In this document: piece after piece, positions 24,393-62,520 of the stretch
Numbering within the stretch: the stretch's first letter is position 1
Layout: the number at the start of each line of letters is the position of its first letter
Origin: Eutreptiella sp. 'Long Island Sound 2002'
Lineage: Eukaryota > Protista > Euglenida
Direction of reading: 5' to 3'
Assembly (NCBI GenBank): GCA_964036045.1
Contig: OZ038379.1
Coordinates: forward strand, 27,032,001 to 27,096,000
DNA: 64,000 nt
Notes under the pieces: generated by a model
The model's database searches: none
Seen by the model: only the letters and a program-made list of their open reading frames with translations
What the model was told of the DNA's origin: nothing
Program-made: the position numbers and the translations under genes

Positions 24393-25901
24393 TCAAGCGG
24401 CGCGCTCGTTCTTAATGTAGTGGTACAGAATGTTGGGCCCCCACCCGGTGGCCCCCTTCACGCCCCACGGGCGGTCGTCGGCGCCCATGAGATCCCCGGC
24501 CACCCCCGCGATGTCCAGGTGCGTGTAACTCACGCCCTCCTCGGCGAACTTCGCCAGGAACGCCGCGGCGGTGCACGAGCCGGCGCAGCGGTCCTTCCCC
24601 ATGGAGTGGAGGTCGCACATTGTGCCCTTCAGCTGGTCCGAGAACTCGCTGTACGTGGGCATGCGCCACACACGCTCGTCCGCCGGGATACTCGCGGCCG
24701 TGAGGGCGGCGGCGGTGGAGTCGTTGTCGGTGAACATGCCGGCGGCATAGTTGCCGAGGGCCACGAGGATGGCGCCCGTGAGGGTCGCGACGGTGAACAT
24801 GGTGTCGATGGTGTACTCCTTTTGGAGGTAGGTCATGGCGTCCGCGAGCACCAGCCGCCCCTCGGCGTCCGTGTTCATGTTCTGGACAGTCAGACCCTTA
24901 TAAGACTTGAGGATCTCGTGCGGTTTACACGCATCCTTCCCGATGGCATTCTCTGCCAAGGCCACAGCGCCCACCACGTTGGCCTTCACCCCGGTGGCGG
25001 CCAGCGCGTGCATCAACCCCAGGACCGAGCACGCCCCTCCCTTGTCCATGTGCATGTTCTCGATAGATCCGGTGGGCTTCAGGTTCAGGCCACCGCAGTC
25101 GAATACCACCCCTTTGCCCACAACTCCCATGGTCTTGTCAGAATCCGGATTGCCCTTGTAATGCATGTAGACGATCTTTGGTTCATGAGCAGCCCCTCCG
25201 CCTACCGCCCGAATCAGGTTCATGCCCTTGGCCTTGATCTCCTCCATATCCACGACGCAGGTGTCAATGCTGGGGAACTTGGCGCACAGCTCCAATGCCT
25301 TGTCTGCCATCCAGTCGGTGGTGGCAATGTCCGCGCGGGTGTTTAGGAGGTCGCGAGTGATGCATGTGCTCGTGGCAAGCGTGACGTACTCATCGACGGT
25401 CGCCGGAGGCGTTGAGGTGAGGAGGGTGAGGTGCTGCACGTGGAGGCACCGGTCATCATCCATGATGCCGTAGTCGTAGAAGTAGTCGGACAAGATGGCG
25501 TGCTGTGCCACCAGTGCCGCAGCCGACAGCCCATCGTCTAGTTCCACATCAGGGATGGCGACCCCAGCAGCGGTCGTCTTGCGGGCTTTCAGCTCCTTGA
25601 CCACCGTCGTAGCGGCCACGCGGAACGTGCGGGCCGTCACCTTCTTCTTCTCTCCCAGGCCCACCAGAAGCACGCGGGAGGCGGCGAAGCCCTCGAGGTC
25701 GTACGCCGTGGCCACCTGCCCGTCCTTGCCCTCAAAGTCCTCCTTCTGGGCGTCGGGCAGCGGCAGGGCTTTGGCGTCCTCCTGCGTCACCATGTACACA
25801 AGTGTGGGCCCAGCGAAGGCCTCGGCCCCCGTGGCCTCCACGGAAATCTTCAGCGCCACCTCGCCGATGGTGATCTCTTTCAGACCGGTGGTCACTGCCA
25901 T
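24393..25901 (-). CDS. LAP: M17 family leucyl (cytosol) aminopeptidase, intronless
   Basis: All M17 metal-binding and catalytic motifs are present: VGKGVVFDCGGLNLKP, MHMDKGGA, NTDAEGRLVLADA, ATLTGA, HLDIAG. The ORF opens at 26012, but M-AVTTG (25901) is preferred because pyrimidine-AG acceptors lie 33 and 58 nt upstream. Confidence 0.97.
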   Translation of the reverse strand: MAVTTGLKEITIGEVALKISVEATGAEAFAGPTLVYMVTQEDAKALPLPDAQKEDFEGKDGQVATAYDLEGFAASRVLLVGLGEKKKVTARTFRVAATTVVKELKARKTTAAGVAIPDVELDDGLSAAALVAQHAILSDYFYDYGIMDDDRCLHVQHLTLLTSTPPATVDEYVTLATSTCITRDLLNTRADIATTDWMADKALELCAKFPSIDTCVVDMEEIKAKGMNLIRAVGGGAAHEPKIVYMHYKGNPDSDKTMGVVGKGVVFDCGGLNLKPTGSIENMHMDKGGACSVLGLMHALAATGVKANVVGAVALAENAIGKDACKPHEILKSYKGLTVQNMNTDAEGRLVLADAMTYLQKEYTIDTMFTVATLTGAILVALGNYAAGMFTDNDSTAAALTAASIPADERVWRMPTYSEFSDQLKGTMCDLHSMGKDRCAGSCTAAAFLAKFAEEGVSYTHLDIAGVAGDLMGADDRPWGVKGATGWGPNILYHYIKNERAA

Positions 25902-28900
25902 GCTCCACGTTGGTGTCGCAGTCAGACTGAGACTGAAAACACTCCTGTTTTGACTGGGTCTGCAAAATGCAACGAGCGGGGGCACAACATTGGGGGCTGG
26001 GGGGCTTGCCATGAAGCCTGAGTACGTGTGCCGGTTGGTGTTTTTGGGTGCATGGCACTGTGTTGGGTTTCCAGAGGAAAGGGTCTACAAAAAGACGTTT
26101 TCCCAACGTCTGTGGAGAAGCACAGATGGTCGGTCCATAGACGGAAAAGTCGTTCTGGTAGGTCAGAGTGCAACAATTGTCCCTCTGCTCACAGGCTGCT
26201 TCTGCCCCTTGGCAATGTTCCCATGCCAGCACATGCATGCTTCGCATGGAGTCTTTCCCAATACTGCTCACCATCACTGATGTGGAAATGTAACACAAGG
26301 CCAGGCAAGGGGACAAAAGGATGAGCAGAATTGGGGGAGGTTCACTGCACACAAACCACCACTGGCAGGGGTGGGGGGGGGGCGGTTCAGTTTCGTTCCG
26401 GACCCCAAGTCCCGCAGCGTAAGCAGGGGGTTCCAAATGGAGAGGGGGGATTTTTTCGGGGTATGGGGGCATTTTTTGAGGTCTCCGCTTCATTCCGATT
26501 TTGAATATACACAAAATATAAATAAAATGTATTTTATATAAATAAAATAATATATCACATCAAATATTAATACAATCTATTTTACCCTTCACCACAAATG
26601 AAAAATAATACGGCATTCTAGTGGACACAAAGATCAACTAGCAATGTCACACTGTCACACGTATGCGTGTCAATGCAATCCGTACAATATTGCAGCTGAC
26701 ACTTGTCACACATGGGCATCTTCTTAGGGGCAAACTTGGTGCAACAAAGGGTACGTACATCCCCATTGTCACACTCCTTGCTTGGGCCTTTTGTTGTTGA
26801 ATCAACCAGCACGCCTGAGTTCGCCGTCTCTCAGTGGCATGTGTCAAATATGGTACCATGTTCACAGGCCTCATCCTTCTCTTGCCTTTCTCTATTTTGG
26901 TGTGACGCTCTTGCAGCGCTACTCTTGCAGCGCTACTCTTGCGGCCATTGGGAAATGAATGGGGTGGGGAAAATGACAACACTGTATGGTTGCTCCGAGC
27001 TTCATGCCGGGGGGAAGGGTGTGGTGCAGAGATTCTGATACAGGAATTCTGAGCAAAGGTTCTTGACAATTTTTTCCAGCCTTTTTGGGGGCTTGGTGCT
27101 TTTTTTTTTTGCTCTCAGGATAATTCACCAAAGTGGCACCACGGCAGTTTTGACATTCAAAGCACGAACAGTGCGGTTGTATACATGTGCATTCTACATA
27201 CTGCATTCCACCATTGTAACAGCACCTTGAACTTCCAACAAAGTGCAACGGACCAAGCAGTTTGGGGGAGTATCTTGGGCTTGGCAGCTTTGGGGTCTAT
27301 GGTGTATTACTAAACAACATGTTGCAGGAAGTGGACACCATTACAACAGGCATTCTTAAGGATTATTCACAATCTGTGGAACGATAATTTTCACCACATG
27401 GACCCACCCCCTCGGTAATCTAGTGAACCCTTGTAAAGACAGGCCTCTCGTTGATTGAATCGGCCTAAGCATCGGATTCGCAGTTGATTGAATCGGCCTA
27501 AGCATAGGATTCGCAGCTGCAACACCGGGGGTCCGAACCTCAAGTCAAGCTTGCCTCGAGGCAGGTGGCATATCGGTGTGTCAAGGACGCCCGTAGAGGG
27601 TCATCCCCAAAATGAGTTGATTCTGGACATAGCCATGCTTGGGCATCTGAATCGCTGAAGTGGAGGCTGGGATCCCAGCAATTTTGCAAGGTGGTTCTGT
27701 TGCAATACACCACTAGCGCCTTGATTGGAGCCGCACTGCCGGAGTGCCCAAAAGAACACCCACTGACAAACGCTTCCATGTCCCATGTGTGTGCACTGTT
27801 GGACAAAGGTTGATACCCCCTTTTGGAGTATTTGGGAGCCATCTTGTGTGTCCTCCCTACGCCAATATGGCAGCTCTTATGCCGCCACGGTGCTGCACTC
27901 GGCTTTGGTTGAGATTTTGAGGGCGCACTAAGTGCAGTGAGCGCAATCACACATTGCGCTGAGTCCGAGAGGCGTGCCAGTAGGGGGCTGAGTTTCACGT
28001 GAGTGTTCGAAGCTTCACCTTATTATTTCACCCACATCATGAAAGACCGCCACCACATTCAATGGGGAGATGTGCTACATCCTAAGAAGAAGCAGCTTTG
28101 AACTATGTGCCATGCTCATTTATTCGTTGTACAAATTACTATTGATTGGTCCATTGATCTATGGAGGTTTGCCTACCAGTAGGGATGCACGTCGCTGCAT
28201 GATGTCCGTGACCAGAAACTTGCTGCAAAAGAGGTTTTGACGATAATGAAAGAAAGCTTAGGGAAAAGGTGGTGAAGGCACAGCACGCAGCAGGAAACAA
28301 ACCAATCACCAAAGCACATTTAATGGCGAACCAATTTAAGGCCGTACGACAACATTGCACCATTGTTCTCGCCACCATAACCAGCTCAATGATACTGAAA
28401 AAGAAAACAATGAAACAACGTTTTTTTTTCAAAGTGAGCACCCCAAAAAGTCTTGACCATAAGAGAGAATGATCTGTTCACTCCACGTGTATTCCAGGGG
28501 CAGCCCATATCCAGTGGGCTCGAAGTGCTAATATCAGTAAAAAAAAAAAAAGCGATTGTTCGCCAATGCATACGCTTGCCAGACACTAACAAACAAAACC
28601 CATGCAGGCAGAACTGATGAAGGCAAAATGGTGAATCTGCACCAGTACGCATGTCCAGGCATTCCGCCACAGCAGCAAACAGCTGGATAGCCATGAACGA
28701 GTTCAATCTCCTGTCACAGACTTGTATGCTCGCGCACACGTACTAGCAGCCTTACAGCACCCAGTAACGGGCACTGCTTCCATTTTGGCTCAGCCCCCCC
28801 CTCCCCCCTGACCCCCCCCCATTCCCCTCACACACACATCGCCCCCCCCCCCTCCGTCTCTTCTTCCCCAGTCCCCCATGTTCCCTTTCATCTGCCGTAC

Positions 28901-30647
28901 AGGACGCCCTACGGCTGCCCACCTCTGCCTGTCGGCATGCTGCGCTCGTCACCAACCACGATGCCCCCTTGGCACTGCAGGGCCCTGGCTGTTCAAGGAT
29001 CAGAAGCCCTGCCGGATGTCGTCAGGGTGCCTGCCAAGTGCCGGAAGCCCAATCTGCAGCGGGGCGCATGTGTGTCGCGGGTCCGCGCAATCTGTTCGCT
29101 CATGGTGACCTCCTGTTCCTCCCTGAGCCCAGCCCTTGGTAATGGCCCTCAGAGCGCCAGGGGAACGACAGGATGACTGGGCGGCCACCCGCATCAGGCC
29201 TTCCCCGCCCTTCCCCCATTCTGGCCTGCTTTCCCCTCTTCCCGTGTCTTTACCGGTGCCCGTTCCACATGGGCCCCTTACGGACCGGAATGGTCCCGTA
29301 GCCCTCCGCCCCGGGCCTCCACAACACCCCCCCCCCCCCGCGGCGGGGGGTGATGATCAGGGGACAAGCGTCTGGCGAAGCAGATAACACATGTGGGGGC
29401 CTGCAGGACCGGAGAGCTGAAGGCGCACACGATGATTCGGAGGCCAGCGGCGCGCCGAGGGAGGACTTGGCCGATCCATTCAACGGTCTTCCTGCGCCCC
29501 TTGAACCCCGAAGAGACCTCATGGGGGGCGTTTGAGTTTAGTTCTCGATCCCCAACACTCACGGCATGGCGGGGGATGGGGGTGGTCCCGGGGTGGGGGG
29601 GTCAGTAATTGTAGGTTTTCCTTTGGCATATTTGAATTACCTCTTCAATTCTGAGCATTTTGACTGCACAAAAATGGGAATGAATGTTCGAAAATCTTCC
29701 ACTTCCTCATGTTTGGAACGTCTTCGTAAGTTTCGAAAAGTGCCTCTTTTGGTGAAAAAGCCCCCCCCCCCCACACCCCCCAGGGCGTAGATGTGGGAGT
29801 CTGGAGGCCGCAAAACACATTCAACAAATCCAGGGGGGACTACAGCAGGGCAATAGCACCGTCAAATTGTCAGTCCCGTTAGAGACTCTGTTCCCAATCA
29901 CGTGATCTGCACATGATATGTACAGTGCGTTCAGGCCCTCCTAAGTTGTTGCCCTGCCGGATGCGCCCGTCACCTTCTGGAGGGGGGTGGGGGGGTAGAC
30001 GTGCACTTCAGCCCCCCCTCACCCCCTGTGTGACATTCCGTCTGGTTGTTGTTTCTTTACGGGGCCCTGGACAGTCAACCGTTCTTCCCTTCGCATGTTG
30101 CGTCGGGTCGCTGCTTTCTGTCAGCCGCTGCGGCCGGTGCTCCTGCTGGTGTTGTTTCTGCGTTTGCAGAGCCCAGTGGTTGGTGTGCTGGGGCTGTGCT
30201 GGATGTGGCGGGATGTGCCGTTTGCGCGTCAGCGGCGCCCAGTAGTTGGCGTATTGGGGTTGTGCTGGTTGTTGCAGGGGTCGTTTGAGTATTTTTGCTG
30301 TCCACACACCTCCGTCCTCAGGCCGTCCACAACCTGCCTCGCTGTGTTTCTGTGTGCGTGAGGCCCAGGTGCCCTGCTCCTCCACGCGTTGTCCCGGCCG
30401 TCCACCACAAACACTCCCCCACTCCGTGGGTCGCGCGTGCGCAGGGTGCGTTCCTTGTTGGTTGCGGGTAGCGTGCACTTCGCGGGTGGCGTGCGCTCCG
30501 TCATGGTTGACGCGGGTGGCGTGCAGGCCTGCATGGTGTCCCAGTGTCCCGGTGTCCCCTTGCCCCCCCGACCCCCTGTGCCTTCGTCTAGCAGCAGCAG
30601 TGCCAAAGGGATCGATCGCCCGGCAAACTGCGTCTTCGGCCACTCGT

Positions 30648-31526
30648 TCATCGATTCTGGAAGAGGAATGGATCCACTGACGAATCCATGGGGGGCTCAG
30701 CCGATTTGGAGGCTTTGCCCTCCACAGGCTGTGTGCGCGGATCACAGAGGCAATCCGGAGGCTTGTGTTGGCATTTCCGAGCCTTCGACAACAAACCACT
30801 TGTGAAGCATAAACTGCGGCGGGGCGTCATCTTCGGCTCGTCGGAGCGAAGGACCGGACCCATCTCCCCCACGAACACGTACACGAGCCCCTCCCACGCG
30901 CGCGTCACGTCGGCGGGCGACACCGCCGCCGCCTCTGTACCGCCGTAGTCCAGTGACGCGATGGTCTCGAGGAGCGCCGCCTTGACGGGATGGAAATGCC
31001 GCAGCCGCACGCCGTACCGCGCGTGCCGCCGGCCGAGGGCCTTCAGGGACTCCGAGAGCCCGCCCTCGTTGCCGTTGAGCCCCCCCCCGAGTGCGCGCGT
31101 CACCCACCGCATCATATCGGCGAACTTTCGCCGCTGCTTCGTGCCGTCGTCGTCGAACAGCTGCTTCAGGTCCGGGGCACGCGCAAAGAGCGCGGCGTAG
31201 AACTCCCCCGCGGCGTCCTCGGAGCCCACCGCATCGGCCGTGGCGAAGAGGAGCCGGACAGTGCGCGGAGTCAGGGCCACCGCGGGCGGGTCGAGGGGGG
31301 CGGGCTGATCGGGCGGGTCGAGGGCGGCAACGTTCTTCGGGTGTGGCGTTGCGGGGGGCGTTCCGGTGTGGGCACTTCCGTGTCGACGTCGCCGTAGGAC
31401 AGTTCGATCTGCCCGTCCGCAAGAAGAACTTGTATCATTTGTGGGTGTCGTCATGGAACTTCCCGGCGGCATCCCCGGCGCCTGAGGCCGTACTCGATTC
31501 GAAGACACGTCGTGGCACTCGGTCAT
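30648..31526 (-). pseudogene. Truncated duplicate globin ORF (no hydrophobic helix, no cyclodeaminase domain)
   Basis: 30850-31433 duplicates 32234-32889. The globin is intact up to GEMGPVL, then reads into unrelated sequence. An in-frame net loss of 75 bp removes the N-terminal hydrophobic segment. Could be functional. Confidence 0.75.
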
Positions 31527-31614
31527 GAACGATCACGCACTGCACGCGGAAACTTATGGCGTCCCTCACTGCGATGTGAAGACCGGCCCATGCGCACGCG
31601 GATGCGCCATCGTT

Positions 31615-32850
31615 TCACGGAAGGAGCCTCTCAAGTTCGCCCCCCTGCCACGCCAGCGTCGCGGCCAACACGTCTCCCCGCGCGGCCACCGCACGCAGCT
31701 CAGGCCTCGTCCCCGCGTTGATCCGCACGTTCTGCAGCGCCGTCCGCGCCGCGGTGACGATGAGCCCCGCCCCCGCCCCGGCGTCCCCAACGCCGCTCTT
31801 CGCAGCGAGCGGCACGAGCGCGATCGCGCAGTGCAGCGCGTGGACTGCCCACTCCGCCGCCCGCAGCGGCACCCCCGCCGCGACCCCCAGCGCCGCCCCG
31901 ATCGCCTCCCGCCGCTCCCGCTTCCCGTCCTCGCCCCCAACGAGGGGCTGCCGGACCGCGGCCATGACGCGGCAGTACGCCGCCATGTCCTGCCTGGCGA
32001 GGGCCTCGAAGGCGGACAGGCACCGCATCAGGCGCCCCTCGATGTCCTGGAGCCTCTGCCGCGTGGCACTGCAGTCGCCCCCCCCCGTCGGAGGTGGGCG
32101 CGTCAGCCGCACGGCCATGAGGAGCAGCGCAGCGCCGTGCGCGGCCGCGACGGCTGTGGCAGTCCCCCCCGCGGGCGCCGCGAGGTCGTTCGACAGCGCC
32201 TCGCAGTAGTCCGCCAGCGGGTCGTTGGGCAGGAGGACCGGACCCATCTCCCCCACGAACACGTACACGAGCCCCTCCCACGCGCGCGTCACGTCGGCGG
32301 GCGACACCGCCGCCGCCTCTGTACCGCCGTAGTCCAGTGACGCGATGGTCTCGAGGAGCGCCGCCTTGACGGGATGGAAATGCCGCAGCCGCACGCCGTA
32401 CCGCGCGTGCCGCCGGCCGAGGGCCTTCAGGGACTCCGAGAGCCCGCCCTCGTTGCCGTTGAGCCCCCCCCCGAGTGCGCGCGTCACCCACCGCATCATA
32501 TCGGCGAACTTTCGCCGCTGCTTCGTGCCGTCGTCGTCGAACAGCTGCTTCAGGTCCGGGGCACGCGCAAAGAGCGCGGCGTAGAACTCCCCCGCGGCGT
32601 CCTCGGAGCCCACCGCATCGGCCGTGGCGAAGAGGAGCCGGACAGTGCGCGGAGTCAGGGCCACTGCGGGCGGGTCGAGGGGGGCAGGCTGATCGGGCGG
32701 GTCGAGGGCGGCAACGTTCTTCGGGTGTGGCGTTGCGGGGGGCGTTCCGGTGTGGGCACTTCCGTGTCGACGTCGCCGTAGGACCAATACACAGAACACG
32801 GCTGCAAATGCGGCGGCAGCAGCGGTGGTCGCCGACTTGGAGGTCCACAT
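31615..32850 (-). CDS. Globin - FTCD_C (formimino-THF cyclodeaminase / methenyl-THF cyclohydrolase-like) fusion protein with N-terminal hydrophobic helix
   Basis: Globin landmarks: B9-B10 FY, CD1 LF, E7 Q (KQRRKF), F8 H (LGRRH), YGV..HF..V..ALL, AW..L.Y. FTCD_C landmarks: LADYCEALSNDLAAPAGGTATAVAAAHGAALLLMAVRLT, QDMAAY, RREAIGAAL..AAGVPL, GDAGAGAGL..AARTALQNVRIN. Single open frame of 411 aa from MWTSK, with very high GC. Confidence 0.9.
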   Translation of the reverse strand: MWTSKSATTAAAAAFAAVFCVLVLRRRRHGSAHTGTPPATPHPKNVAALDPPDQPAPLDPPAVALTPRTVRLLFATADAVGSEDAAGEFYAALFARAPDLKQLFDDDGTKQRRKFADMMRWVTRALGGGLNGNEGGLSESLKALGRRHARYGVRLRHFHPVKAALLETIASLDYGGTEAAAVSPADVTRAWEGLVYVFVGEMGPVLLPNDPLADYCEALSNDLAAPAGGTATAVAAAHGAALLLMAVRLTRPPPTGGGDCSATRQRLQDIEGRLMRCLSAFEALARQDMAAYCRVMAAVRQPLVGGEDGKRERREAIGAALGVAAGVPLRAAEWAVHALHCAIALVPLAAKSGVGDAGAGAGLIVTAARTALQNVRINAGTRPELRAVAARGDVLAATLAWQGGELERLLP

Positions 32851-35660
32851 GTTGGACGCAAATCGATCTGCCAGTCCGCAAGAACTTGTCACGTGTGGAT
32901 TCCCAACCGCTTGTATCTACATTTAACTGTTCCAACCGCTTTTCTCTGTCTTCAGCTGACGTTCACGGTTGAGGAAAAGTCAGAGGCAGACATGTCAAAA
33001 ATACTGACCACAATGCTAATTTTGGGGCAACGCTAATTTTGGGGCAACATAAAAAGCAAATGGTTATGTCGATAGAGCCTGCGGCCAACCGTGCAGCCTC
33101 CATCATATCTCTCTTGACGACACCGGGGCAGAATTGCTCAGGGCGTGGGGGGGTGGGGGGGACGCAGTGAGCAGAGGGGGTGAGTGGCAGGGAGGAGGGG
33201 GGGGATCATTGGTCCATCCTCAGCAAGAAACGGCTCAGCCGAACTACATTGCACCGCCACTGTCTCGCACAGTGGAGTGAACAAAGGGTAACACACGGGA
33301 ACGAAACATCAGACAAGGGGTAGCGTCATGGGATTAGCATTGACCAGAGAAGAAAGTATCGATCAACACCGTCAGACCTTTGCTTTGTTGTCTGACCTCT
33401 CTTCCCCCACCTTGAGATTGTCTGGCTACTTGCCCCCACCCGCAGGCCTGCCCCTAGGAATGCCAGTTGGTTCGGGTGTGGTCAGCATGAAGAATGAGAC
33501 CCGTGTGGTCAAAAGACGTGCACATCACGTGTCAAATGGATGCCACAAATGGTGTCATTCCGTGCTGTCGGGTGTTGCGCGCTCGTCAAAGACATGAGTA
33601 GCGCACCAACGGAGGGGGTATGGGAACACCTGTGGTATAGGTGGTGCGGGGCCCGTCACCTGACAGCCCTCTATACACCACTTCCTTTCTTCCAAAATCT
33701 GTCGGCGCACCCCCTGATATCCCGCCGGTTATCGTGCCCGACCCCCACAGCTGGTTACCTGTTGTGCCCCTTCGTCATCCTCACGAGCATGCTGCTGGCT
33801 TGACAACACGCCATCGGCAACAAGGCAAGGGGAAACATGCGTGCGCGAATATGCAAAGGGTTCGGGGCGCCCACGCCCCGCAGGTCCCTGCCCTCCCTCC
33901 CACACGCCCCTCTCTGGTTCCTGTGCAGCGCCCTCAAGATACAGCACTGGGATGAGAGGGGCAGCTGATTGGAGTGGTGTTTGGAACAGGCTTGATGACG
34001 GATTTACAGCCAACCCCGCCCCCCCTTCCTTTTTGTGCAAACAACGCGCTGTCCAAACAACACCCGGTGCAACGTTGGACCCGTGGACCATTTTGGGGTT
34101 TGGAATGGAAATGGGTGTATTTGCTGTGATTTGGCAATGACCATGGCACATCTGGGCTGTTTGACGGGGTGTGGTATGCTTCATCAACCCCCAAGAGGTC
34201 CGTTGGGAGCACAATGCCGCAGGCATGTGGCACAAGCTCGTGCATAAACAACGGCCGAGTCACTAATCATTGGGGATTGGGGATAGCTGGACCCCACACC
34301 CATGGCATGGTGGGAGGGGGAGTCAAAAAATTGTCAAACCCCCTCACAGAGGTTGTTAGATCAAAGCAACCTTACATGGGAAAACGCCAGATAACCCCCT
34401 TTTCTGGGCCCATTCGTGTACCATACCCCAAGGGATTTGTCCAATGAAAACATCCCCCGATGAGTTTTGGTTGGGACCCGCCCTAGAACCCTTCCCGCCC
34501 CACATTTGAGTGAAAGCAACTCCAAGGCCCGTTTCGCCATCTGTTGATGTGGCCTTGGGCCAGGCTTGGGTCATTTTGGTGGCAAGGGAAGTAGCTACAC
34601 CAAGCAGAAGAGCCCAGGAGAGGCACAGTTGAGCATTGAATGAGCCATGGAGCAATTCATCAATTTGAACAACTTCTGCAAATGCACGTCACAATGCACC
34701 ACAGAAAGGCCCTAGAGTTGTCCCTATCCATCTATACAAATGGGCTGGGATAGCCTGGAAACAGCCCTTTCACAGGCCGTTGGGCCCTAATGAATGGGCC
34801 TGGTTGGTGCTGCATAGCTCCCCATGGGTTTACATGTATGCACTCACATTGTCACCATATGATGGCCCATGACTGGCCCAAGGGAACTCAGCTATTATCT
34901 GAGGTTACCCAAAAATTGCAGTTTTTCCACCAACCCATGCCGGCCTGAAAACGGCTTACATCCCCACCTATGGGCCCCCTTAGAGGGCTGGATCGGGGGT
35001 ACCAGGTGATAGACCCTGGGACTCCGCCGTTGGTGAGGCGGTCCATATTGAATAAAAAGAAAAAGGAATGGAACCTGGATCAGCATCCACACAGTGGCCA
35101 CTAAAGGCCAACCAAGTTCTGCCCACCAATAGTGCAACCAAGCCCAAAACGGCGTTTTTAGGGACCAATGGGCACGACGAGGGGCAGTTAATTGGTGCTA
35201 CATGGGTTTAGAGGAATGATGAAAGATGTAGGTATGCTGGGTGAGACTGCGCAACATACTCATCAGAGCCCAAGTATGGTACAGGGGTACGTCAAAGGTT
35301 GCTGGACGCTACGGTTAAAAATAGGTGCAGAACTGTACCTTGAGTCTCTGCAACACTACATATCTCTCAGGACGGTGGGATTTGTGCCAACACGGAGGGT
35401 TTTCGGGGGTCGGAGCCATTCTTGCCTTATTTGTGCTGCCGCTGAGTGTCCCGTAGGGGGGGGTATGTGGGGAATATTCGGAAAGCCCTTGAACAGGGCT
35501 ATTTGGGACACCTTGGGTCTGCATGCTTGCATGCGGCACTGACGACATATTTGAGAATTTCGTCCGTTTTGGACGGTGCCTGTGCTGCCTGCTGCGGCAA
35601 TAGACCATTCTTGCCCCCACCCCCACCCCATTACCGGGTGCGCTTTTTTGGGGGGGGGTG

Positions 35661-61365: not shown

Positions 61366-62520
61366 CTAAACAGTAGCATTGGCAATGGCTTGTTGCCTCC
61401 TTGTCAGCACAAGTGGTTGGAGGCAAGGAGCCTTGGCCCTTCGCCGCTTGGCACGCTCAACGCGCACCTTGTTAGCTTCCACTGGATCTGAGGTATAGTC
61501 ACTATCAACACTTACCTCACCATCCGATACAACAATCTCTGAATCCTGCACATTATTGTTGTGAGGTGCACTTGAGCTAGAGCTTGAACTAGAGCTTGCG
61601 TTGAAGGGGGAAGCCGCGGGCTTAGGTGCCCTTGGTTTCTCCTTAAGGTCTGGGTCGTGGCGCCAAGGACCCACAAGCTCATACTTCTGGAAGCGACGCA
61701 AATAAAATGCTACCAAATTAATAAGCACCTTCATTCGCCGGAACAACTTTTCCATCCCCGCCTCACCATGTCCACGCCAAGGAGCGCGTACAATGGCAAA
61801 AGTCCAAAAAATAGCATACAGCTGCTCCACACGAGAACGGAAGAATGCATGCGTGTCATTGTATATGGATGCTGTGCGACCAAACTCTTTTCCTGCAGGT
61901 TTGCGAGCAGGTGCAACAACATGTGGGCGACCACTATAAGCACCATCCGCCAACCCAAATTCCCACGGCTTCATTTTACCCCAAGGTACAAAGTTGGTGA
62001 ACAAACTGCTGTCTCCTGCCACACCTGGGTCTGGACCACACCAAAATGGGATGCGACCATGAAAAGTGAGACCCACACTCAGCAGCTGCATACTTAGGTT
62101 GGTAGCATGCATCACCGTGGTCACCTTGGAAGCATGCAATTGGGAAGGAATCAAACGTATAAGTGACCCAATGGGGAAAAGCAATGCAATGATTCCAAGG
62201 GTCATATAAATCGGACTCCCGAACGTCATCCATAACGGAACACAGGAAGTTAATATCCTCGTCAACTTCTTTGTGCAACGTAGTTGAAGAACGCTCATCA
62301 TTAAAAACAAAAGAGATGGCCTCCCAAGACCCCAGGTAAGACTCGTTCACAATGGCAGTGGGGAAACCCATTACGGCACGAACACTTTTCTCCCTGCCTC
62401 CACACCGCTTCTTCCACCATTCTAAATCTTCCTCACTTGTCAAAGATGCAAATGGCAAGTCAGACCATTTGACCTCGGTGTTGCGCATCCATTTGCTTGT
62501 AGGAGGCAACTCGGCCCGTG
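61366..62520 (-). pseudogene. Harbinger/IS5-like DDE transposase, frameshifted
   Basis: TYTFDSFPI (D1)...YQPKYA, a frameshift near 62090, then GRIPFWCGPDPGVAGDSSLF, LADGAYSG (D2), APARKP and YNDTHAFFRSRVEQLYA (E). Confidence 0.85.

Follow-up and report, generated by a model that had tools for sequence, protein, structure and literature searches.

A globin joined to a folate cyclodeaminase-like domain behind a predicted membrane anchor: a small, conserved algal gene family

In nature, haem chemistry is wired to other activities chiefly in the chimeric globins. To our knowledge, their known partners are reductases, signalling domains and nitric oxide (NO) synthase, with no folate one-carbon enzyme among those described. 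Does such a partnership exist, and what might it do? The question is raised by one gene, at 31615..32850 on the minus strand of a 64,000-nucleotide stretch (hereafter, the window) of contig OZ038379.1 in the assembly of Eutreptiella sp. ‘Long Island Sound 2002’ (GCA_964036045.1, positions 27,032,001 to 27,096,000 of the forward strand; positions below count from the first letter of the window), which encodes a globin followed by an FTCD_C domain. That this is a real conserved fusion gene we hold to be highly probable. Our best reading of its product is a membrane-tethered, cytosol-facing, globin-coupled folate enzyme, to which we attach a rough probability of 0.45, a figure that blends the fusion gene with the mechanism proposed for it.

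Translation of the minus strand gave an open reading frame (ORF) that runs without interruption from an ATG at 32850 to a stop codon at 31617..31615 and specifies 411 amino acids. In the ORF list the frame opens 14 codons further upstream, with a GTG at 32892, and this ATG is the first that it contains. The coding sequence (31615..32850, minus strand) is complete according to the ORF list, the translation and Pfam matches to Globin and FTCD_C, and both of its termini coincide with those of homologues. An intron at the domain junction was considered and rejected, as no splice-donor-like sequence occurs there and the homologues are collinear; the locus is an intact nuclear gene without introns. 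A sequence-only reading of this DNA had proposed a single uninterrupted ORF holding a hydrophobic helix, an Arg cluster, a Pro-rich linker, a globin and an FTCD_C domain: all of these are present, on the minus strand.

The 3-on-3 globin domain occupies residues 64-209 (32224..32661, minus strand), as delimited by Pfam, a PDB profile match, Foldseek and the helices of a structural model. Pfam Globin (PF00042) scored 36 bits over residues 88-171 (E 9e-9; cut-off 22), while a family profile searched against the PDB found 3wfw as its best sequence match (E 3e-18) and 3s1i at E 4e-13. An AlphaFold2 model of the window protein, built on a 56-row alignment, contains seven globin helices (A, B, C, E, F, G and H) between residues 67 and 209—at 67-80, 83-96, 98-103, 109-130, 134-150, 155-171 and 184-209—with a predicted local distance difference test score (pLDDT) >85. 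Foldseek superposed residues ~65-209 of this model on Hell’s Gate globin I (3s1i) with a template modelling (TM) score of 0.83 by target and a root-mean-square deviation of 2.8. Alignments to solved flavohaemoglobin-like globins and to the protein’s own family place F89/Y90 at B9/B10, F104 at CD1, Q111 at E7 and H148 at F8 (codons for Y90, Q111 and H148 at 32581..32583, 32518..32520 and 32407..32409, minus strand), and F104, Y90 and Q111 have their counterparts at these sites in 3wfw and 3ubc. All 19 aligned sequences carry H148, nearly every row that covers the columns of Y90 and Q111 keeps those residues and F104 is conserved in the family alignment; the LG.RH..Y motif around H148 and A190-W191-E192 are, like H148 itself, invariant in the family. 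The globin half is a flavohaemoglobin-like (F-family) single-domain 3-on-3 globin, and the alignments, Pfam and the model bear out the earlier description of a complete 3/3 globin with Tyr at B10, Gln at E7 and His at F8.

The FTCD_C (cyclodeaminase/cyclohydrolase) domain fills residues 210-411 (31618..32223, minus strand), on the evidence of Pfam, Foldseek and invariant residues. Pfam FTCD_C (PF04961) scored 92 bits over residues 212-380 (E 4e-26; cut-off 24.5), and Foldseek matched residues ~207-411 to the methenyl-tetrahydrofolate cyclohydrolase FchA (7vg4) and the Thermotoga cyclodeaminase (1o5h), each with a TM score of 0.85 by target, and also to the cyclodeaminase domain of rat FTCD (1tt9); the full FTCD_C domain claimed from the letters alone stands on this score and these folds. 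Pfam found neither formiminotransferase domain (PF07837, PF02971) in the window protein, and both occur in P0011. In a comparison set of 34 stand-alone FTCD_C proteins, ten positions are fully conserved (P226, G227, G228, G229, L242, M245, D288, R313, D356 and N378); the window protein keeps nine of them, the exception being G227. N350A also lies off the stand-alone consensus and is common to most fusions, and across the family the glycine-rich motif has changed from PxPGGGS to AxPAGGT. Judging by these residues, the FTCD_C half looks functional, yet appears to be a distinct branch of its family.

Could the fusion have been made by the assembler, from separate globin and FTCD_C genes misjoined at a repeat? 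A 568-bp segment is indeed repeated 1384 bp downstream at ~99% identity (copy A 32784-32218, copy B 31400-30834), with an extra 22-nt match 5′ of the repeat (A 32884-32863, B 31425-31404), and the repeat end coincides exactly with the globin/FTCD_C junction; a near-identical 551-568-bp repeat that ends at a domain junction is a classic place for a misjoin. Two samples supplied three runs whose contigs we placed on positions 29000-34500; the runs behave as genomic DNA because depth is even over non-coding sequence. A 551-nt contig (32234-32784) occurs in the three DNA runs at ~2x local depth. An 893-nt contig (31371-32263) at single depth holds the whole FTCD_C domain, overlaps both repeat ends and extends 30 nt past the junction in each of the three runs. 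A single-depth contig of 385-388 nt (~30492-30879), which the third run gives as two pieces, holds the copy B tail, and the upstream contig begins at 32755. The sole path using every piece—upstream, repeat, FTCD_C, repeat, tail—is the window order, and the fusion and the duplication are therefore present in the reads and not assembler-made. The same fusion is, moreover, encoded in independent genomes and metagenomes, and a chimera, contradicted both by the contigs of three DNA runs and by these homologues, is barely credible.

Copy A comprises the 5′ leader, start, anchor, linker and globin (32233..32884, minus strand; blastn and global alignment of the copies). Copy B is an ORF on the partial duplicate (ORF 30648..31526, repeat 30849..31425, minus strand; ORF list, Pfam and alignment) that encodes a globin only: it keeps the leader, the linker and the globin, is missing the 75-78 nt in which the start codon and anchor lie, and continues into an 86-residue tail of unrelated sequence. 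The copies differ at two nucleotides over 183 shared codons, both synonymous, and copy B would be either a dead fragment or a very recent duplicate in which translation from an upstream ATG gives a soluble globin. Directly after copy B, at 29920-30490, lies an extremely high-copy sequence that occurs once in this window; its summed contig depth in the three DNA runs is 2e5-1e6, against 8-40 in the flanks, and many loose contig ends fall at 30020-30022.

A search of 5.8 billion proteins returned homologues of 400-512 amino acids, with 78-87% query coverage and 37-50% identity, and in every one aligned a hydrophobic helix is followed by a K/R cluster, a variable linker, the globin and FTCD_C. 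In all, ~10 homologues at 37-50% identity have this layout. A profile search found a named member in the haptophyte Diacronema lutheri (KFE25_008859, P0166; 453 amino acids; ‘Globin domain-containing protein’ in UniRef). Its gene is intron-free in the long-read assembly GCA_019448385.1 and has TPR and aldo-keto reductase genes on its 5′ side, the same pair that lies 5′ of the homologue on Logan contig L002. Further members, pavlovophyte-like ones included, were found in Logan assemblies, in JGI metagenomes and on contigs of marine metagenomes, some of them from Tara Oceans; two bear the automatic JGI label ‘formiminotetrahydrofolate cyclodeaminase/hemoglobin-like flavoprotein’. The window protein thus belongs to a small conserved algal family with four parts in fixed order. 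Far from being already common in databases, the architecture is rare—HMMER, run exhaustively over 1.84 billion cluster representatives, gave only ~6 full-length fusion clusters—and its sole presence in public databases is as automatic annotations, none of them studied. Pfam detects the globin in 11 of 19 family members, and architecture queries therefore under-count the family. The sequence-only reading had called the architecture unfamiliar from described proteins; this holds for the literature searched, in which we found no description of a globin-FTCD_C protein, but not for the databases, where it was already present in NCBI/UniProt (as a ‘hypothetical protein’ of Diacronema lutheri) and in JGI annotation.

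At the edges of the family, two distant relatives, P0092 and P0069, retain a globin-like half, FTCD_C and the RAWEA..Y junction but have lost the proximal His, and P0091 has DUF4202 fused to FTCD_C, which seems to be a recurrent fusion partner. A tree of 17 family members leaves the window protein’s place unresolved, nearest to a marine-metagenome group; the long P0092 and P0069 branches make rooting unsafe, and a euglenid-haptophyte transfer is left unsettled by the tree. L011, which encodes P0069 (4001-5500), is not supportable as a same-genome paralogue, having zero repeats in common with the window. For relatives, one unigene of the Tara metatranscriptome (P0019) is limited to the FTCD_C end, whereas P0170, in the same cluster and from a run that may or may not be RNA, crosses the junction. 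One sample (ERR14847148; L004 and L005) yielded two members, P0162 and P0004, both with a G+C content at third codon positions (GC3) >0.9, which are either two paralogues of one pavlovophyte-like organism or the product of a mixed sample. Among the best matches to the family profile were also giant proteins with 6-14 tandem flavohaemoglobin-like globins: P0012 (2461 amino acids), P0168 (3326 amino acids), P0015, P0018 and P0021. One is of animal origin, named ‘uncharacterized protein’ and listed in EukProt as an NCBI ‘PREDICTED’ XP_ entry; others come from JGI metagenomes.

Ahead of the globin, residues 6-24 (32779..32835, minus strand) form a hydrophobic helix and predicted signal-anchor (Kyte-Doolittle mean 2.1-2.3; AlphaFold helix 5-28), followed by an Arg cluster and a Pro-rich, low-complexity linker at residues 25-63 (32662..32778, minus strand; read from the sequence, pLDDT 54-77), in which RRRR makes up residues 25-28 (32767..32778) and the Pro-rich stretch residues 29-63. 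A single N-terminal hydrophobic helix of ~19 residues with basic residues C-terminal to it is what defines a signal-anchor. Full-length homologues have an equivalent hydrophobic segment and then K/R; of the nine whose N-terminus is complete, eight have 3-7 K/R among the first 12 residues beyond the helix. The helix and basic cluster would act as a signal-anchor that holds the protein at a membrane with both domains in the cytosol, the latter because of the positive-inside rule as applied to basic residues C-terminal to the helix. Microsomal cytochromes P450 have an anchor, basic and Pro-rich N-terminus of the same layout.

The FTCD_C domain begins ~5 residues after the globin H helix, and the longest and most conserved block in the family crosses the junction: RAWEALLYVFVGEMGP..L...L....AL.NDLAAPAGGT. 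The window protein model has a mean pLDDT of 90.3 and a predicted TM score (pTM) of 0.85, and that of the Diacronema protein a pLDDT of 90.0 and a pTM of 0.84; in both, the globin H helix leads nearly straight into the first FTCD_C helix, which in the window model lies at 212-219, with a pLDDT of 91-96 over the junction. The models suggest that the two domains hold a defined mutual orientation, because such pTM and pLDDT values are not expected with freely moving domains of ~150-200 residues. No convincing two-domain match was found in the AlphaFold Database fold clusters, nor in the ESM Atlas clusters, which were searched by features and by shape.

From this arrangement we propose a globin-coupled folate enzyme with a regulatory mechanism, which we rank first among the readings considered while holding it tentatively, at rather less than even odds. 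By analogy with its relatives, the globin would bind haem b and O2 or NO, and its TyrB10/GlnE7/HisF8 pocket would bind O2 and NO avidly, as flavohaemoglobins do. The ligand or redox state of the haem would, if the models are right, be relayed to FTCD_C along the uninterrupted H helix and across the interface where the domains pack, and FTCD_C would interconvert 5-formimino-tetrahydrofolate or 10-formyl-tetrahydrofolate and 5,10-methenyl-tetrahydrofolate.

The two activities might instead share a chain without allostery, the globin serving as an NO dioxygenase or in nitrite handling and FTCD_C as an independent folate enzyme or as a dimerisation scaffold that pairs globins on the membrane. TyrB10/GlnE7/HisF8 is typical of NO-dioxygenating flavohaemoglobin-like globins (nearest solved structures 3s1i, 3ubc, 3wfw, 1cqx and 1vhb), and solved FTCD_C domains are oligomeric, with several chains in 7vg4 and an octamer in the title of 1tt9. 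Flavohaemoglobin-like globins of marine phototrophs, moreover, are tied to nitrate and NO metabolism (PMC6779911; SyNOS, PMC6104048) and, in a marine diatom, their genes rank with those that respond most strongly to nitrate (PMC6779911). Sustained NO dioxygenation, however, needs a reductase partner, and none is encoded in the protein, and a passive tether would call neither for so extremely conserved a junction nor for such confident interdomain packing. We consider this alternative rather unlikely, though worth keeping in view.

FTCD_C might also stand in for the FAD/NAD reductase of flavohaemoglobins, a bound reduced folate donating electrons to the haem in a folate-dependent NO dioxygenase. 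The domain does occupy the reductase’s place, C-terminal to an F-family globin; tetrahydrobiopterin or tetrahydrofolate is a cofactor of NO synthase oxygenase domains (PMC6104048); and the family-wide change in the glycine-rich motif may indicate changed use of the folate site. The idea is nevertheless speculation, tetrahydrofolate is a poor catalytic reductant unless recycled, and we hold this reading very doubtful. A broader claim, that of a new haem-folate enzyme class in which folate feeds the haem (as NO dioxygenase) or haem occupancy or ligation gates methenyl-tetrahydrofolate production at the membrane, strikes us as distinctly unlikely; if true, its haem-gating option would tie the one-carbon, glycine and photorespiratory fluxes of secondary algae directly to O2/NO or haem status.

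Several observations weigh against a globin-coupled folate enzyme. The position of G227, which is Gly in 100% of stand-alones, is Ala in 88% of fusions; P224A and K303L, each common to most fusions, also depart from the stand-alone consensus; and the NCBIfam FchA equivalog model (NF045657) scored 63 bits against a cut-off of 275, marking a relative and not an equivalog. Because conserved positions differ and the FchA score falls below its cut-off, folate chemistry may be altered or lost. In the P0092 and P0069 lineages, to judge from their missing proximal His, the globin-FTCD_C partnership needs no haem. The interdomain packing is known from prediction with a shallow alignment only. No near-identical protein fragment was found in a domain-only search of 15 billion predicted proteins, and searches of sequencing runs for a transcript of the fusion gene gave three DNA-like runs and zero RNA runs. 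This last result, together with the recent partial tandem duplication, the very high-copy repeat that adjoins it and the gene-poor region, is also what one would see of a gene copy that is silent or in decay, such as one at a locus newly duplicated and flanked by transposons, which would then be of evolutionary interest only. A frame intact over 411 codons, ends that both match homologues, the retention of all family-invariant residues and a GC3 of 0.88, near the 0.82 of the neighbouring M17 aminopeptidase gene, all speak against decay, which we judge improbable.

Were the globin-coupled folate enzyme borne out, it would be the first direct link of O2/NO or haem status with the tetrahydrofolate pool, in algae, in which these pools underlie NO, nitrate assimilation and photorespiration alike. 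With a small family of intron-free genes, one of them from a haptophyte that can be cultured and has a genome, biochemical tests are feasible.

The surroundings of the gene were also surveyed. A C/T-rich tract read directly from the sequence at 33125..33205 (minus strand), ~280-350 nt 5′ of the ATG, may be a candidate trans-splice acceptor region if the host is a euglenid; a search with one approximate spliced-leader pattern found no match. A 17-bp unit (CAACGCTAATTTTGGGG) is repeated 2.2 times at 33011-33048, ~160-200 nt 5′ of the ATG, and an Rfam scan of the 64-kb window gave no match. An intact, intron-free gene for an M17 leucyl aminopeptidase lies at 24393-26012 (minus strand; Pfam E 9e-98); its product resembles the enzymes of bacteria and plant chloroplasts more closely than it does the trypanosomatid ones in the PDB, and its atlas and PDB matches are all bacterial-like. 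An ORF at 61366-62310 (minus strand) has a weak match, just under the gathering score, to DDE_Tnp_4 (PIF/Harbinger-type transposase), and a DDE_Tnp_4 ORF also adjoins the distant relative P0069 on L011.

Set beside known systems, the closest counterpart is Diacronema KFE25_008859, which shares the four-part architecture, key residues, junction motif and lack of introns (41% identity over 81% of the query); between its G and H globin helices it carries an acidic insertion of 30-40 residues, which the window protein lacks. Hmp, Vitreoscilla haemoglobin and Hell’s Gate globin I (3S1I) have in common with the window protein a 3-on-3 fold without a D helix and the TyrB10/GlnE7/HisF8 set. The flavohaemoglobin Hmp, however, has an FAD/NAD(P)H reductase, whereas Pfam finds no FAD/NAD domain in the window protein, and the NCBIfam Hmp model (PRK13289), whose cut-off is 432 bits, scored 16.6 and matched the globin part alone. 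Unlike Hmp and the flavohaemoglobin-like single-domain globins, the window protein has Phe rather than Tyr at G5, a membrane anchor and a fusion to a folate enzyme. Classical globin-coupled sensors carry a sensor- or protoglobin-family globin; Pfam found no Protoglobin match in the window protein, whose best matches are F-family globins. It is neither a flavohaemoglobin nor a classical globin-coupled sensor, even if it may work in a sensor-like way. HGbRL (3WFW), a flavohaemoglobin-like globin with a Roadblock/LC7 domain, resembles it in having an N-terminal globin and a C-terminal non-haem output domain, but the output of HGbRL and of globin-coupled sensors is signalling, whereas the window protein carries a metabolic enzyme fold. 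With FchA (7VG4), TM1560 (1O5H) and FTCD (1TT9) its FTCD_C domain shares the all-helical fold and most of the invariant Pro, Gly, Asp, Arg and Asn residues; it differs from them in its 20-26% identity, altered glycine-rich motif, lack of a formiminotransferase and fused globin. SyNOS of Synechococcus PCC 7335 and diatoms, a globin-NO synthase fusion (PMC6104048), is unrelated to the window protein in partner enzyme, chemistry and domain order beyond the globin, yet like it places a 3S1I-type flavohaemoglobin-like globin N-terminal to an enzyme in marine phototrophs, and is itself linked to pterin/folate cofactors and nitrogen metabolism (PMC6104048).

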